Virus record (IMG/VR): IMGVR_UViG_3300023184_000026
Location: 186,001 to 250,000 of that record
Length of the DNA stretch: 64,000 nt
Direction: 5' to 3' (one strand)
Part shown: piece by piece, positions 8,706 through 13,043 of the stretch
Layout: each line of letters begins with the position of its first letter
Numbering within the stretch: position 1 is the first letter of the stretch
Made by a program: the position numbers and the translations under genes
The notes under the pieces: model-generated
Database searches by the model: none
What the model was told of the DNA's origin: nothing
Seen by the model: the letters and a program-made list of their open reading frames with translations, nothing else

Positions 8706-9095
8706 ATGAAACTCATTACCAAAGAAATTGATTCTAAACTGACTGCTGCTGGCGACACTGGCACCAAGGTCATCTGCAAGTTCTTTAACCCCTGTGGTGC
8801 GGGCACGTGGCTCATCACAGGTCGTGACCCAGAAGAGCCAGACATTCTGTGGGGTGCTGCTGACATTGGCTTTGGTTGCGTGGAGTTTGGCACCATCAGC
8901 CTAAGCGAACTGGAGAATGTGAAGCTCAGGTTTGGGCTCAAGATTGAGCGTGATCTGCATTGCAGCGTTGAAGGTGCAGACGTGAACACGTTTCTTGACC
9001 GCGACAGTCTGTGCGGCTTGCAGGAAACCGAAGATCGCGGTGCGCACGAGGCCGTGAACACGTTTCTTGACCGCGACAGTCTGTGCGGCGTCTAA
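8706..9095 (+). CDS. DUF2958-like protein with duplicated C-terminus
   Basis: KFFNPCGAGTWLIT...GAADIGFGCVEFGTISLSELE...IERDLH. Confidence 0.8.
   Translation: MKLITKEIDSKLTAAGDTGTKVICKFFNPCGAGTWLITGRDPEEPDILWGAADIGFGCVEFGTISLSELENVKLRFGLKIERDLHCSVEGADVNTFLDRDSLCGLQETEDRGAHEAVNTFLDRDSLCGV
8981..9089 (+). repeat. perfect 37-bp direct repeat x2 with 35-bp spacer
   Basis: CGTGAACACGTTTCTTGACCGCGACAGTCTGTGCGGC at 8981-9017 and 9053-9089. Confidence 0.95.
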
Positions 9096-9096
9096 A

Positions 9097-9258
9097 ATGA
9101 ACGACAAAATTCATGCCGCTATTGGCAACTGTCCGAAATGCGGAAAACAGTTTTGGTTAAATGATGTTCCCCTCAAGGGGTTCTGTTGGGGCACCGAAGA
9201 AAAACCACACGTCCAAGTTGTAAAAAAAATTCCATCCAGCGTTCAACCTTACAAATAA
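9097..9258 (+). CDS. small zinc-ribbon protein
   Basis: CPKCG...CWG...H. Confidence 0.55.
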   Translation: MNDKIHAAIGNCPKCGKQFWLNDVPLKGFCWGTEEKPHVQVVKKIPSSVQPYK

Positions 9259-9259
9259 A

Positions 9260-9487
9260 ATGGCTAAAAAACTATATCGTATTCCTGTTGAGTGGGCTGT
9301 AACAGGCACGTTGCTTGTTGAAGCAGAAAGTCTAGAAGAAGCATTGCTTGAAGCAGAAGATGCTCCTTTGCCAGAACCCGAGGATTATATTGAAGGTACA
9401 TTTGAGATCAATCGTCAAATGATTTCGTTTGTCAACAAGAAATTGACAAAAGAAGAAAAAGATTTTTGTGAAAGAGAAATAATTTAA
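9260..9487 (+). CDS. DpnD/PcfM-like acidic protein
   Basis: KLYRIPVEWAVTGTLLVEAESLEEA. Confidence 0.7.
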   Translation: MAKKLYRIPVEWAVTGTLLVEAESLEEALLEAEDAPLPEPEDYIEGTFEINRQMISFVNKKLTKEEKDFCEREII

Positions 9488-9781
9488 AAATCTTTAACGA
9501 TTTTTTAGTTTTGTTTTGACTTAATAAAAAAAGTTGCTATTTATTATGAGTAGCAACTTTATTTTTTCCCATGAAACTCTCAAATTCATCTGGGTTTTCG
9601 TTCATATACAATCACCCTGCTCTCACCGTCGTTAAATCGACTCCTGCTTACGTCAAGATAAATCCAGAAAACAAAACAAAACTTGTGTTAGAAAAAAGAG
9701 AAGAAAACAAGAAAAAGAATTGACAATTTTATAATCGGTGACATGCTAATATATGTTAGATAATAACATTATGGGTTTGTT

Positions 9782-10843
9782 CTATTGAAATCTACCATTG
9801 GGTGCTTTATTACACCCAATTGATTCTATGGATTTTGCTCGTCTGTAACTGTTGTTGGGAACTATTATTCCCATCAGCATGCATCTCTTTTTTAATCCAA
9901 CATCACTCAACCCAAATTGAGGACCAAGTTTTGATAAAGGAGTATTATTGACCATTTCTTGCAATTGTTCTTTTTCCGGCAGTTGAATTTTTCTGGATGC
10001 ATGGTTATGAATATTGGCACATTTTTTACAACGAATTGAACGTTGTGCAATATTTTTATCACAATCTTTACACTTTTTTTGTTCTTTTTTCTTGTTTATT
10101 GGTATGTATACATCATACTGAAAATTACTTACGGGTCTATGGTGAAACTGGATATCATCTCGTGCTTCTACCGCGAAGTTCTCAATTCGAATTTGAGTAG
10201 ACCCACCACTCTTCCAAACATCATAATCAAAATCATTGAGTAGTGGTACATTGACAATTGTGTCCAGAAGCGAAGAAATATATTCGCTTTTGAAGCATAA
10301 TGAATAATGTATTTCTATTATTTTCCACCCAGCAGCAGTAATCAAATCATGTTTTTCTTGATAATATGGTTTTAATTTTCCTATAGCGTCATAGTGCTGA
10401 TTTCCATTAATTTCTAAACATACCATTTTTTCCGGAAATGCAATATCCACAGCAAATGATCTATCTATTAATGGGGTAAATTCTGGCAAAAATTTTATAT
10501 TCTTTGACAAAATAAACTCTTTTAGTTTCTCACACGGAACTGATTTAAACTTTGAATGACGTTTCCAAACGTGCTTATCTGGATTTTCTTTTAGCCACAC
10601 TTTTCTTTTGTCAGATATTATCTTCTTGGCTTCTGATGTATGCTTACGAAAACCTCCACAATCTTTACAATAGAGTGAACGTGGCTTGGCATCTTTATCG
10701 CATTTTTCACATTTTTTAACTTTTCTTCGTTTTCTGCTTGGATTTTTTTCACACCATCTAATGTGATTTGCTTTTTTGTGGGGAGATAAGTCAAATTCTA
10801 AATCACAGTGTTGACAGGTCCATTTACTCGGTGTATTTTCCAT
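9782..10843 (-). CDS. putative homing endonuclease: Zn fingers plus DUF559/Vsr-like PD-(D/E)XK domain
   Basis: CQHC...HIRWC, CEKC/CKDC; FAVDIAFPEKMVCLEINGNQHY...GWKIIEIH; C-terminal CKDC...CKKC and HTH-like tail. Confidence 0.8.
   Translation of the reverse strand: MENTPSKWTCQHCDLEFDLSPHKKANHIRWCEKNPSRKRRKVKKCEKCDKDAKPRSLYCKDCGGFRKHTSEAKKIISDKRKVWLKENPDKHVWKRHSKFKSVPCEKLKEFILSKNIKFLPEFTPLIDRSFAVDIAFPEKMVCLEINGNQHYDAIGKLKPYYQEKHDLITAAGWKIIEIHYSLCFKSEYISSLLDTIVNVPLLNDFDYDVWKSGGSTQIRIENFAVEARDDIQFHHRPVSNFQYDVYIPINKKKEQKKCKDCDKNIAQRSIRCKKCANIHNHASRKIQLPEKEQLQEMVNNTPLSKLGPQFGLSDVGLKKRCMLMGIIVPNNSYRRAKSIESIGCNKAPNGRFQ
10133..10208 (+). tRNA. tRNA-Arg(TCT), nested antisense inside the nuclease ORF
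   Basis: GGGTCTA/TAGACCC, D stem GTGA/TCAT, TCGTG-CTTCTAC-CGCGA, CTCAA-TTCGAAT-TTGAG, ACCA; 76 nt. Confidence 0.9.
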
Positions 10844-10975
10844 ATCAATATATATCCGAAATCAAACCCAAAACGCAACATTATTTAAAAATTTTATTTT
10901 CATAGTTCAAGTCACCAATTTTTGTTTGACTTTCATAAAAACTCCGCTAGAGTAAAGTGAATGTTCTTTTTTACT

Positions 10976-11047
10976 CCTCCTATAGCTCAACGGTAGAGCG
11001 AAGAACTCATAATTCTTGGGTTACAGGTTCGAATCCTGTTGGGAGGA
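10976..11047 (+). tRNA. tRNA with CAT anticodon (Met or lysidine-Ile2); no encoded CCA
   Basis: CCTCCTA/TGGGAGG, AAGAA-CTCATAA-TTCTT, GGTTCGAATCC. Confidence 0.88.
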
Positions 11048-11095
11048 CTATTTTGTTCTTTACTTTTTATAAAAATCTGCTAGAATATCTAAACA

Positions 11096-11311
11096 ATGAA
11101 AAATATCTCATTTCGCTCTCTTGTTATTGATTTGCTTGATTCGCCTGATGGCATTCCAGAACCTACTTATGTAAAGTTGGTTGAATTTGCTGAAACAAAC
11201 CATCCAGATACATATGCTGACATTTGGGATGCCACAGAAGGTGGTGATGGGAACAATGGTTATTGTGTGTATCTTGATGAAGATACTGCACAAGAATTGC
11301 GCAAAAAGTAA
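11096..11311 (+). CDS. hypothetical early protein
   Basis: Own promoter at ~11060. Confidence 0.7.
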   Translation: MKNISFRSLVIDLLDSPDGIPEPTYVKLVEFAETNHPDTYADIWDATEGGDGNNGYCVYLDEDTAQELRKK

Positions 11312-11320
11312 TTTACACGT

Positions 11321-11394
11321 GGGAGGTTAGTTTAATGGTAAAACTGGTGCTTTATAGGCGCTTGTTGGGGGTTCGAATCCCTCACCTCCTACCA
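11321..11394 (+). tRNA. tRNA-Ile(TAT)
   Basis: GGGAGGT/ACCTCCT, GGTGC-TTTATAG-GCGCT, GGTTCGAATCC, ACCA. Confidence 0.85.
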
Positions 11395-11463
11395 CTTTTT
11401 TATTGACATTTATAAAAACTCTGCTAGAGTAGATAAAGTTAAGTAGAGGTTCTTTCATATTTT

Positions 11464-11538
11464 GGTCTTGTAGCTCAATGGTAGAGCAGTTGACTTTTAA
11501 TCAATTGGTTGTGGGTTCAAATCCCACCGAGACCACCA
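11464..11538 (+). tRNA. tRNA-Lys(TTT)
   Basis: GGTCTTG/CGAGACC, GTTGA-CTTTTAA-TCAAT, GGTTCAAATCC, ACCA. Confidence 0.93.
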
Positions 11539-11541
11539 TTT

Positions 11542-11638
11542 TCAAGTAGATACCCGTTTAATGAAAATAATCGCCCAATATGTCTGAGGCTGATTACTAC
11601 GGTGCGGAAATTGACAAATACACCGAACATCTACTTGA
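11542..11638 (+). ncRNA. putative closed-stem structured RNA
   Basis: Terminal TCAAGTAGAT/ATCTACTTGA perfect 10-bp stem; inner AATCGCC/GGCTGATT and CGGTG/CACCG stems. Confidence 0.5.
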
Positions 11639-11823
11639 TTCAATTTATCCTTACTCAAAGAAGGAGGTAACTTACTCTTTGAAGGAGGATATCAGCGATG
11701 AACCCAAAAACAAGGAGGGAGTGGGCTCGGTTCCCATAATAGTGCGTGAAAGCTCGCACCATCGCACAATTTTAGTTTGACAAAATATAAAATACGTTCA
11801 TAGTTATGTATGTTCTTTTTCAG

Positions 11824-11909
11824 GCCAACTTCGCATAATCTGGCATTGCAGCACTTTTGTAAAGTGCCGTCGAAAGACATTATCGGTTCAAATCCGTTAG
11901 TTGGCTCCA
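11824..11909 (+). tRNA. tRNA-Thr(TGT) with long variable arm
   Basis: GCCAACT/AGTTGGC, GCACT-TTTGTAA-AGTGC, variable arm GTC-GAAA-GAC, GGTTCAAATCC, TCCA. Confidence 0.8.
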
Positions 11910-11963
11910 CTTTATTTATCTCATATCGCGATACTTATGTTTGTTCTTTTTACATTTTTATTT

Positions 11964-12076
11964 GAGGCGGCGGCGTGGAAGGACACGCAGCCTTTCGAGT
12001 CTATGACAACAAGAGACCCCGCTAAGTTGCGGTTAATTGGCGTTGTCAGTTGGTATCAATTCCAACCCGTCCTCTA
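11964..12076 (+). ncRNA. tRNA-like RNA with D and T arms but an expanded central region
   Basis: GAGGCGG/CCGTCCTC, GCGT-GGAAGGAC-ACGC, GTTGG-TATCAATT-CCAAC; centre TGACAAC/GTTGTCA and CCGC-TAAGTT-GCGG. Confidence 0.55.
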
Positions 12077-12081
12077 TTTTT

Positions 12082-12156
12082 GGCCCTATAGTTTATCGGT
12101 TAGAACATTCGGTTTTCATCCGGAAGGGCGGGATTCGATTTCCCGTAGGGCTACCA
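12082..12156 (+). tRNA. tRNA-Glu(TTC)
   Basis: GGCCCTA/TAGGGCT, TTCGG-TTTTCAT-CCGGA, CGGGA-TTCGATT-TCCCG, ACCA. Confidence 0.9.
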
Positions 12157-12159
12157 ATT

Positions 12160-12261
12160 TCAGACAGAGGTGCAAGTAAGTATTCTACATCCTCTGGAGT
12201 ATTGCATAAGGTGCTTGACAGCAATAAATAACAGGACTAATTATCCTGCCTCTGTATCTGA
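12160..12261 (+). ncRNA. putative closed-stem structured RNA
   Basis: TCAGA-CAGAGG / CCTCTG-TA-TCTGA terminal stem; inner CAGGA/TCCTG and TGCAA/TTGCA. Confidence 0.45.
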
Positions 12262-12440
12262 TTTAATTTTTCGTAACGCTAAAAATCGGAAGCATGAGTG
12301 ATCAATCTTCAAAAGATTCGCTGTTGCTGTAAATATTTTCACAGGTCGCTCTGTTGAAACTCTAAAGGTTATGTCGAGCGCTAGTGACCCTTGCCGGTAT
12401 CACACAGGTTGACCTCTAATCTTTAGAGAATTCTTTTTAC

Positions 12441-12582
12441 GCAGTGTTAGTGTAACTGAACTATATGAAACAAATTGGTAGGCTGAGGCGTGCTGAACGT
12501 CGCTGGAACCAGCCAAAATGAATCATTTGCACGTTGGCTTTCCAGCCAAAAGTGGGCCGCGTGTTCGGCTCACACTGCTCCA
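12441..12582 (+). ncRNA. tRNA-Gly(TCC)-like RNA with ~70-nt insertion in the D-loop
   Basis: GCAGTGT/ACACTGC-TCCA acceptor, GTGT/GCAC D stem, TTGGC-TTTCCA-GCCAA (6-nt loop), non-canonical T arm. Confidence 0.6.
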
Positions 12583-12624
12583 ATTTTTCTTGACTTTTTA
12601 TAAATTTAGTTCACTATTACTGAT

Positions 12625-12810
12625 ATGAAACTTAACCCTGGCAATTGTTACATTCAAAAGTTCTTCAATTACGATTATGAAAAATGGGATGATGAGATTA
12701 TCAAGAACAATCCATCTTGCATCTTTCATCTGATCGAGGTTGTGAAGAACAACCCAGATGACGAAAACAACTTGTTACGAAAATTTAATCTTAATCCTGA
12801 CTTTTTTTAA
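12625..12810 (+). CDS. hypothetical early protein
   Basis: Promoter at 12590, ATG at +35. Confidence 0.65.
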   Translation: MKLNPGNCYIQKFFNYDYEKWDDEIIKNNPSCIFHLIEVVKNNPDDENNLLRKFNLNPDFF

Positions 12811-12830
12811 TTTAGTTCATTCTCTGAGTT

Positions 12831-13043
12831 ATGCACTTTTATTACTTTACCACTTATACGTCAACGGAATCCACGCAAACAGGTTTTGCTTGGAAAGTTA
12901 ATTCAGCTTTGGATAAACGCGAAGTTATAAATTTTATTTCTGCCAAGTATCACGACAACAAGCCGCCTTTTGTTTCAGAAATGAAACCGAGTAACTGGAA
13001 ATTTTGCGGTAAAATGCGCAAAGAATTGTTAAAACTTTCTTGA
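12831..13043 (+). CDS. hypothetical early protein
   Basis: Promoter at ~12797; TGA stop lies inside next TTGACT. Confidence 0.65.
   Translation: MHFYYFTTYTSTESTQTGFAWKVNSALDKREVINFISAKYHDNKPPFVSEMKPSNWKFCGKMRKELLKLS

Follow-up and report, generated by a model that had tools for sequence, protein, structure and literature searches.

A putative homing nuclease gene in a giant phage carries a tRNA-Arg gene, antisense and in frame, between its two predicted domains

How can a complete tRNA gene lie inside a protein-coding gene without destroying either of them? The question is raised by a 64-kb stretch (the window, 64,000 nt) of a ~297-kb phage contig, IMGVR_UViG_3300023184_000026, in which a minus-strand ORF at 9782-10843 is open for 353 codons without an internal stop and encloses a plus-strand tRNA-Arg(UCU) at 10133-10208. 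ARAGORN calls this 76-nt tRNA-Arg(tct) with an encoded CCA, on the same strand as five further tRNA genes (Met, Ile, Lys, Thr and Glu) at 10976-12156. An Rfam scan of 4 kb missed it because of its speed filters, but 10100-10240 scanned alone scored 50.9 bits against a gathering score of 29. The observation made in the initial annotation, an intact tRNA nested antisense and in frame within a nuclease ORF, is confirmed, and the tRNA is read as residues 212-237, GGSTQIRIENFAVEARDDIQFHHRP, as stated there. The imperfect direct repeats it described on either side, at 10110-10127 and 10218-10235, match at 15 of 18 bases. The first, on the C-domain side, encodes (N)FQYDV and the second, on the nuclease-domain side, encodes DFDYDV; the corresponding peptide motifs, FQYDVY and FDYDVW, are conserved in every member of the clade, and FDY ends the nuclease domain in all homologues, nested or not.

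We first asked whether the arrangement recurs. A megablast of 9000-12300 against GenBank phages returned only short tRNA-Lys matches, so no close cultured relative exists. A protein search retrieved 248 homologues. The 18 closest clusters (54-86% identity) all keep the stretch coded by the tRNA, and the closest proteins have the same length and no stop. Homologues at about 38-44% identity keep the nuclease domain and the Zn-ribbon/HTH tail, joined directly, but lack that stretch, which is therefore an insertion between two older domains. DNA was fetched for these and other relatives, and every nested case has a 76-nt tRNA-Arg(tct) on the opposite strand and in the same codon phase. At least 12 distinct tRNA/ORF alleles were found in independent assemblies (JGI, ENA, Logan and NCBI), of which three (loci L070, L076 and L077) belong to nucleases only 38-40% identical to that of the window. 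A homologue search restricted to linker residues 205-250 returned only five proteins, but as the method needs shared 5-residue words this gives no estimate of prevalence.

Several lines of evidence indicate that the tRNA is under selection as a tRNA. Across the 12 nested alleles, 99.6% of stem positions pair and 15 of 21 pairs show changes on both sides, whereas none of 500 shuffles reaches this and slid structures pair at only 38-45%. Compensatory change occurs in all three variable stems, and the tertiary 19:56 pair is G:C in six alleles and C:G in six. Positions U8, G18 and U33, the anticodon and CCA are invariant, although about half of the nested alleles have unusual T-loops, for example A at position 54 and G at position 56. 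The tRNA segment also has a history of its own within the clade: it is identical in L150/L156 and in L002/L158, although synonymous sites in their flanks are saturated, and it is much more diverged than the flanks between the window and L146.

The domains on either side of the tRNA evolve as protein. dN/dS is 0.10 in the nuclease domain and 0.16 in the domain downstream of the tRNA, with synonymous sites there near saturation. Across the linker (10124-10213, residues 211-240) dN/dS is 0.54 and synonymous change is suppressed (pS 0.30 against 0.73 in the flanks), as expected if the RNA rather than the peptide is the constraint. The C-terminal domain has no conserved start codon of its own; the only Met between the tRNA and the Zn ribbon is in the P0002/P0003 lineage (two of the homologue clusters), and apart from that lineage translation of this domain requires reading through the tRNA. 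The frame used is the only antisense frame open in the nested tRNAs. It is open in 12 of 12 of them but in only 13 of 45 free tRNA-Arg(tct) genes from related loci, the 32 closed ones including close relatives with an in-frame TGA in the T-arm. An AlphaFold2 model built with a 61-sequence alignment has two confident domains, with pLDDT of about 95 for residues 70-210 and about 90 for residues 251-340, and a stretch with pLDDT below 50 for residues 216-246, which is consistent with the tRNA-coded part being a disordered linker.

What kind of protein is this? Residues 66-210 (10214-10648) form a predicted Vsr/DUF559-like PD-(D/E)xK nuclease domain. A PDB sequence search with a 61-sequence profile found nothing for this domain, and a fold search was needed instead. 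Foldseek ranks the catalytic domain of the homing endonuclease I-Bth0305I (3r3p) first, with probability 1.0 and a TM-score of 0.68-0.75 normalised to the target; RAP-domain proteins, AbaSI, the DUF559-like NGO0050 and Vsr come next, 3hrl and Vsr 1cw0/1vsr being among these structures. D133, N146, G147, Q149 and H150 are invariant and E144 nearly invariant in 61 homologues, and on the basis of alignment columns alone, rather than residue-by-residue superposition on I-Bth0305I, the conserved D133, E144, N146 and H150 resemble the DUF559 pattern. In Pfam, the window protein scores just below the RAP (PF08373) cutoff (22.6 against 24.2 bits) and has no DUF559 (PF04480) hit, although some homologues carry these hits. 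No GIY-YIG domain was found in Pfam or PHROGs. The predicted DNA-binding part (9785-10123, residues 241-353) contains the FQYDVY motif, a Zn ribbon with four invariant cysteines (C258, C261, C272 and C275) and an HTH-like helical bundle, for which the profile search gave only weak hits to the LrpA HTH and the L40E Zn ribbon. An N-terminal extension with two Cys/His zinc-finger-like motifs (10649-10843, residues 1-65) is present in only some members: clusters P0002-P0004 and some distant homologues have it, while P0005-P0019 start near residue 66. In eight of the nine relatives whose called genes were listed, the nuclease gene is the only one on its strand within 1 kb; in L154 a second same-strand gene follows it directly.

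The surroundings of the gene were then compared with relatives that lack it. A search with the neighbouring DUF2958-like gene found two phage contigs, L160 and L161, whose flanks are 97-98% identical to the window but which have no nuclease. At the corresponding place they carry an ordinary 77-nt tRNA-Arg(tct) (5996-6072 in L160 and 3852-3928 in L161). The window matches them, with one mismatch, through the upstream region of that gene (9715-9772, plus strand) and then through its first 8 nt, GGGTTTGT (9773-9780), before switching to the stop codon of the nuclease. The upstream region contains a TTGACA-type promoter-like site, but this call is weak: a promoter/terminator scan did not list it and found 15 promoter-like sites against 11 +/- 3.9 in shuffled sequence, and no claim on transcription rests on it. 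At the other end, 61 nt upstream of the nuclease ATG, the T-loop, 3' acceptor strand and CCA of a tRNA-Arg are nearly intact in the related locus L148, which from the T-loop onward agrees with the 3' end of the L161 tRNA-Arg at all but two bases. In the window (10905-10917, plus strand) and in L147, another relative, this tail carries a 10-nt deletion, leaving the T-loop followed by CCA-like bases. A cassette of 1124 bp (9781-10904), comprising the nuclease gene, the nested tRNA-Arg and the 5' leader of the nuclease (10844-10904, minus strand; nearly identical in L147 and L148), has thus replaced nt 9 to about 53 of a resident tRNA-Arg and brought a different tRNA-Arg allele with it. We cannot rule out the possibility that the right-hand relic travels with the cassette rather than marking this particular insertion, since an antisense T-loop relic about 40-70 nt upstream of the ATG occurs across much of the family, including members whose neighbouring tRNAs are on the nuclease's own strand. 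A second empty site was sought through the GP88-like flank of L150, but all hits were at most 57% identical and none had a nuclease or a tRNA-Arg nearby.

These junctions also explain the two short motifs that the initial annotation saw as bracketing the ORF. Both exist, GGGTTTG(T) at 9773-9780 and CAAACCCA at 10863-10870, but they are not a conserved inverted repeat: the left one, given as TGGGTTTG, is the stub of the invaded tRNA, whereas the right one lies in the conserved leader of the nuclease. In L147 the left motif is GGGTATAT, which does not pair with the unchanged CAAACCCA on the right.

The cassette shows the presence/absence polymorphism expected of a free-standing homing endonuclease gene. 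L147 has flanks 97-98.6% identical to the window, but its cassette is only 87% identical and the two nested tRNAs only 68% identical. One backbone therefore carries three alleles: none, cassette 1 and cassette 2. The tRNA-Met of the window (10976-11048, plus strand) goes with the cassette rather than with the backbone, being 83% identical over 55 aligned nt to the L161 tRNA-Met but contiguous with the cassette alignment to L147 (window 9770-11102). It is thus a co-converted flank that arrived with the cassette.

The association with tRNA-Arg extends to the family. Of 119 distinct family ORFs, 108 lie in loci with tRNA genes, and of the 100 tRNAs within 100 nt of an ORF, 47 are Arg(tct), against 9.2% of all tRNAs in those loci, a comparison not corrected for shared ancestry. 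Four layouts recur: an antisense tRNA-Arg 2-10 nt after the stop codon, a same-strand tRNA-Arg 30-60 nt before the start, a same-strand tRNA-Arg just after the stop, and the nested layout. Orphan T-loop motifs are enriched upstream of the ATG, occurring in 56 of 119 ORFs against a background of 0.5 per kb. Homologues in cultured T4-like phages (Mosigvirus, Jiaodavirus, and Acinetobacter and Klebsiella phages), annotated as hypothetical protein or as 'HNH endonuclease', are 38-45% identical over residues 9-197. They consist of the nuclease part only and lie on the same strand as a tRNA-Arg(tct), whose first ~15 nt are overlapped by the end of the ORF, without nesting. A tree of the nuclease domain places the window's 12-member nested group in one clade (support 100/97) and a second nested group elsewhere, which requires at least two changes of state. 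In the window's group the tRNA comes after the FDY motif, whereas in the other group it lies between two Zn ribbons.

Taken together, we consider it likely that this is a free-standing homing-endonuclease cassette that sits inside, and has destroyed, the phage's resident tRNA-Arg(UCU) gene, and that carries a complete tRNA-Arg(UCU) on the opposite strand, in the middle of the nuclease gene, where its antisense sequence is translated in the only open frame as a linker modelled as disordered. What the comparisons establish is the geometry, selection on the cloverleaf, on both protein domains and for an open frame through the tRNA, the presence/absence polymorphism on a near-identical backbone and the family-wide link to tRNA-Arg(UCU); nuclease activity and its target, synthesis of the full-length protein, expression, processing and charging of the tRNA, and antisense control are inferred from comparative evidence alone. 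In this view, the enzyme would cut nuclease-free tRNA-Arg alleles in or near the gene, possibly at the T-arm, and repair would copy the cassette together with its own, presumably uncut, tRNA allele and nearby markers. The tRNA would be made from a plus-strand transcript, probably starting in the retained upstream region of the old tRNA-Arg, and this transcript may damp nuclease expression. AGA makes up 54% of Arg codons in 18 long ORFs, and because the cassette holds the only tRNA-Arg(UCU) gene found in the 64 kb searched of the 297-kb contig, its loss would be costly and the phage could not lose the nuclease by simple deletion.

The interpretation offered in the initial annotation, a selfish nuclease that engulfed a useful tRNA as its interdomain linker, is therefore supported only in part. 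The tRNA is intact and under selection, the nuclease is Vsr/DUF559-like, the tRNA-coded stretch is a clade-specific insertion modelled as a disordered linker, and the proposal that retention of the nuclease is tied to the tRNA gains support from the empty-site comparison. 'Engulfed', however, is not what the junctions show, and its suggestion that tRNA transcription doubles as antisense control stays a conjecture. Its statement that homing endonucleases sit beside rather than around tRNAs holds for most of this family, in which tRNA-Arg(tct) is the usual neighbour.

Alternatively, though we regard this as unlikely, the layout is a frozen accident, a neutral by-product of very tight packing and frequent recombination in phage tRNA clusters, in which two partial nuclease copies on either side of one tRNA-Arg fused across it and the fusion persists because it still works, with no retention or regulatory benefit. 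ORFs of this family often run into neighbouring tRNAs: those of L153 and L076 end inside an antisense tRNA-Met, that of L095 overlaps one by 27 nt, and the T4-like homologues overlap the start of tRNA-Arg. Duplicated FDY or Zn-ribbon modules flanking the tRNA, and a tandem module duplication in L148, fit a fusion of copies, and nesting appears in two separate clades with different breakpoints. When we tried to derive the nested layout from the abutting one by a single rearrangement, every scheme needed two or more deletions. A frozen accident would explain the origin of the layout but not its maintenance, as the frame is kept open in all 12 alleles, the tRNA segment has been exchanged without ever breaking the ORF, and the cassette is the sole tRNA-Arg(UCU) at a locus where nuclease-free relatives have one.

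Chance read-through, in which the real gene is only the nuclease domain or two separate genes and the C-terminal part is a relic or is translated separately, is very unlikely. One antisense frame of a 76-nt tRNA is open fairly often, as the 13 of 45 free genes show, and the cultured T4-like homologues consist of the nuclease domain alone. Against this, the C-terminal domain is under purifying selection with saturated synonymous change, lacks a conserved start, keeps its four cysteines, is modelled with confidence and is joined directly to the nuclease domain in un-nested homologues. It is likewise very unlikely that the tRNA is a dead relic kept only because it now codes for part of a protein: the unusual T-loops might suggest this, but a disordered linker cannot impose base-pairing, synonymous sites are constrained and there is no other tRNA-Arg(UCU) in the window. 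An artefact or chimera of the metagenome assembly can be all but dismissed, since the same layout is found in independent assemblies from JGI, ENA, Logan and NCBI, and one homologue cluster alone (P0009) is listed in 38 index blocks, with 24 contigs carrying it read.

Free-standing homing endonucleases in phage tRNA clusters and Vsr-like homing endonucleases are both known (PMC2330249, PMC2677866, PMC3239194). Phage T4 SegB, a GIY-YIG enzyme encoded in the T4 tRNA gene cluster, is absent from close relatives, its homing carries neighbouring tRNA genes along and its recognition site includes the conserved T-psi-C stem-loop of a tRNA gene (PMC2330249), which the orphan T-loop relics at the cassette boundary recall. 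However, the nuclease fold predicted here is Vsr-like, and SegB lies between tRNA genes, whereas this cassette lies inside one, destroys it and carries a replacement within its own coding sequence on the other strand. I-Bth0305I, the EDxHD prototype (PMC3239194), is likewise phage-borne and mobile and combines a nuclease domain with a separate DNA-binding module, but sequence identity is only 13-16%, the motif here reads D...E-x-N-G-x-Q-H, and the domain order is reversed, with the nuclease (residues 66-210) preceding the Zn ribbon and HTH (residues 241-340) rather than following a NUMOD/HTH region. In 'fractured genes' (PMC2677866) the endonuclease also splits a host gene, but the damage is compensated by a split intein or an intron, here by a second copy of the destroyed gene. 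The DUF559 and RAP-domain nucleases (PF04480, PF08373; PDB 3hrl) share the fold and the core motif but are not known as tRNA-cluster mobile genes. Integrative elements that target tRNA genes also make their insertion harmless by bringing the missing tRNA sequence, and leave a displaced 3' remnant at the far end. Those elements use an integrase and an att site and rebuild the same tRNA at the junction, whereas here a whole independent tRNA gene lies in the middle of the element, antisense within a protein-coding frame, and spread is presumed to occur by double-strand-break repair. In a full-text literature search that was not exhaustive, we found no report of a tRNA gene nested antisense and in frame within such a gene, or of a homing element that replaces the gene it destroys with an internal copy; one candidate paper proved unrelated.

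Homing endonucleases usually avoid harming their host by hiding in introns or inteins or by sitting between genes. Here the damage would be repaired by a third route, in which the element brings a spare copy of the gene it breaks. As that spare copy, an RNA gene, overlaps a protein-coding frame on the opposite strand and both are under selection, the locus is a clean natural example of one DNA segment bearing two constraints at once, tRNA structure and an open reading frame. Gene callers and tRNA finders will usually report one of two such overlapping genes and discard the other. Relatives of the nuclease sit against tRNA-Arg(UCU) in cultured T4-like coliphages, so the biology can be tested in the laboratory. 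We tentatively suggest, as a possibility rather than the likelier case, that this is a new persistence strategy for a selfish gene, a kind of hostage replacement; the layout has arisen or been kept in at least two nuclease clades. The endonuclease would home into an important tRNA gene, destroy it and carry the only replacement, which would also be the cleavage-immune allele, inside its own reading frame. Neither simple deletion nor decay of the nuclease gene could then free the host from it without risking the tRNA, a possible addiction-like mechanism for selfish nucleases.

Relative to L160 and L161, the two related contigs that lack the nuclease, the DUF2958-like ORF (8706-9095) carries an extra tandem copy of about 36 nt at window positions 9018-9052 (repeated peptide VNTFLDRDSLCG), and the BLAST segments overlap by 36 nt in the relatives' coordinates. 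Within the tRNA cluster, a 71-aa ORF lies between tRNA-Met and tRNA-Ile (11096-11311). This ORF is absent from that position in L161, where a 71%-identical copy lies about 2 kb away, which is another rearrangement in the cluster. Similar promoter-like modules (TTGAC[A/T] or TTTACT, 16 nt, then TAGAGT, TAGAAT or CATAGT) precede several tRNA genes, at 10926-10953, 11059-11086, 11403-11430 and 11777-11804, and the spacer module at 11052-11102 recurs after tRNA-Ile at 11398-11431. The tRNA-Thr(tgt) at 11824-11909 is unusually long (86 nt by ARAGORN), with an Rfam match that spans 83 nt at 45.9 bits, and L161 has an 88-nt version. An insertion or a long arm is possible. Rfam searches with 'evalue' filters on 4 kb (window 9000-13000) missed a tRNA that scores 50.9 bits when scanned alone. 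Negative cmscan results on AT-rich phage DNA should be rechecked on short stretches.

Among the relatives carrying the nuclease, nested-clade ORFs end inside a further antisense tRNA-Met in the loci L153 (4866-4909) and L076 (1130-1140). The C-terminus of the homologue P0015 reads ...EGFEPP..., the antisense of a T-arm. In the locus L148 (3490-4704), which encodes the 404-aa homologue P0004, a tandem duplication of the FQY-plus-Zn-ribbon module lies downstream of the nested tRNA. The locus L010 has two Zn ribbons separated by a Lys/Glu-rich spacer and no tRNA. Directly after the nuclease stop in the locus L002 (4829-4860) lies a stub of about 26 nt (acceptor strand plus D-arm) from a different tRNA-Arg type, which shares 19 nt with the tRNA-Arg of L010. 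The left breakpoint therefore differs between lineages, being at nt 8 in the window and at about nt 27 in L002. In four further loci (L124, L129, L137 and L138), a tRNA-Arg(TCT)-like sequence with about 20 extra nt after the anticodon arm was found on the nuclease's strand, within ~130 nt upstream of the nuclease ATG; ARAGORN does not call it. In the cultured T4-like phages MK373774.1 (L239, 1492-2218) and OK499980.1 (L240, 1492-2211), the homologue is annotated as 'hypothetical protein' (elsewhere as 'HNH endonuclease', which does not fit the fold), and its CDS overlaps the annotated tRNA-Arg(tct) by about 15 nt.

The alignment of the nested tRNAs showed further variation at columns 19, 54, 56 and 58. 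Half of the nested tRNAs have the 19:56 pair flipped to C:G, and three of them (those of the loci L146, L155 and L157) also have A54 and T58 instead of T54 and A58. Such unusual T-loops might reflect escape from a nuclease that reads the canonical T-loop or, alternatively, avoidance of stop codons in the overlapping frame.
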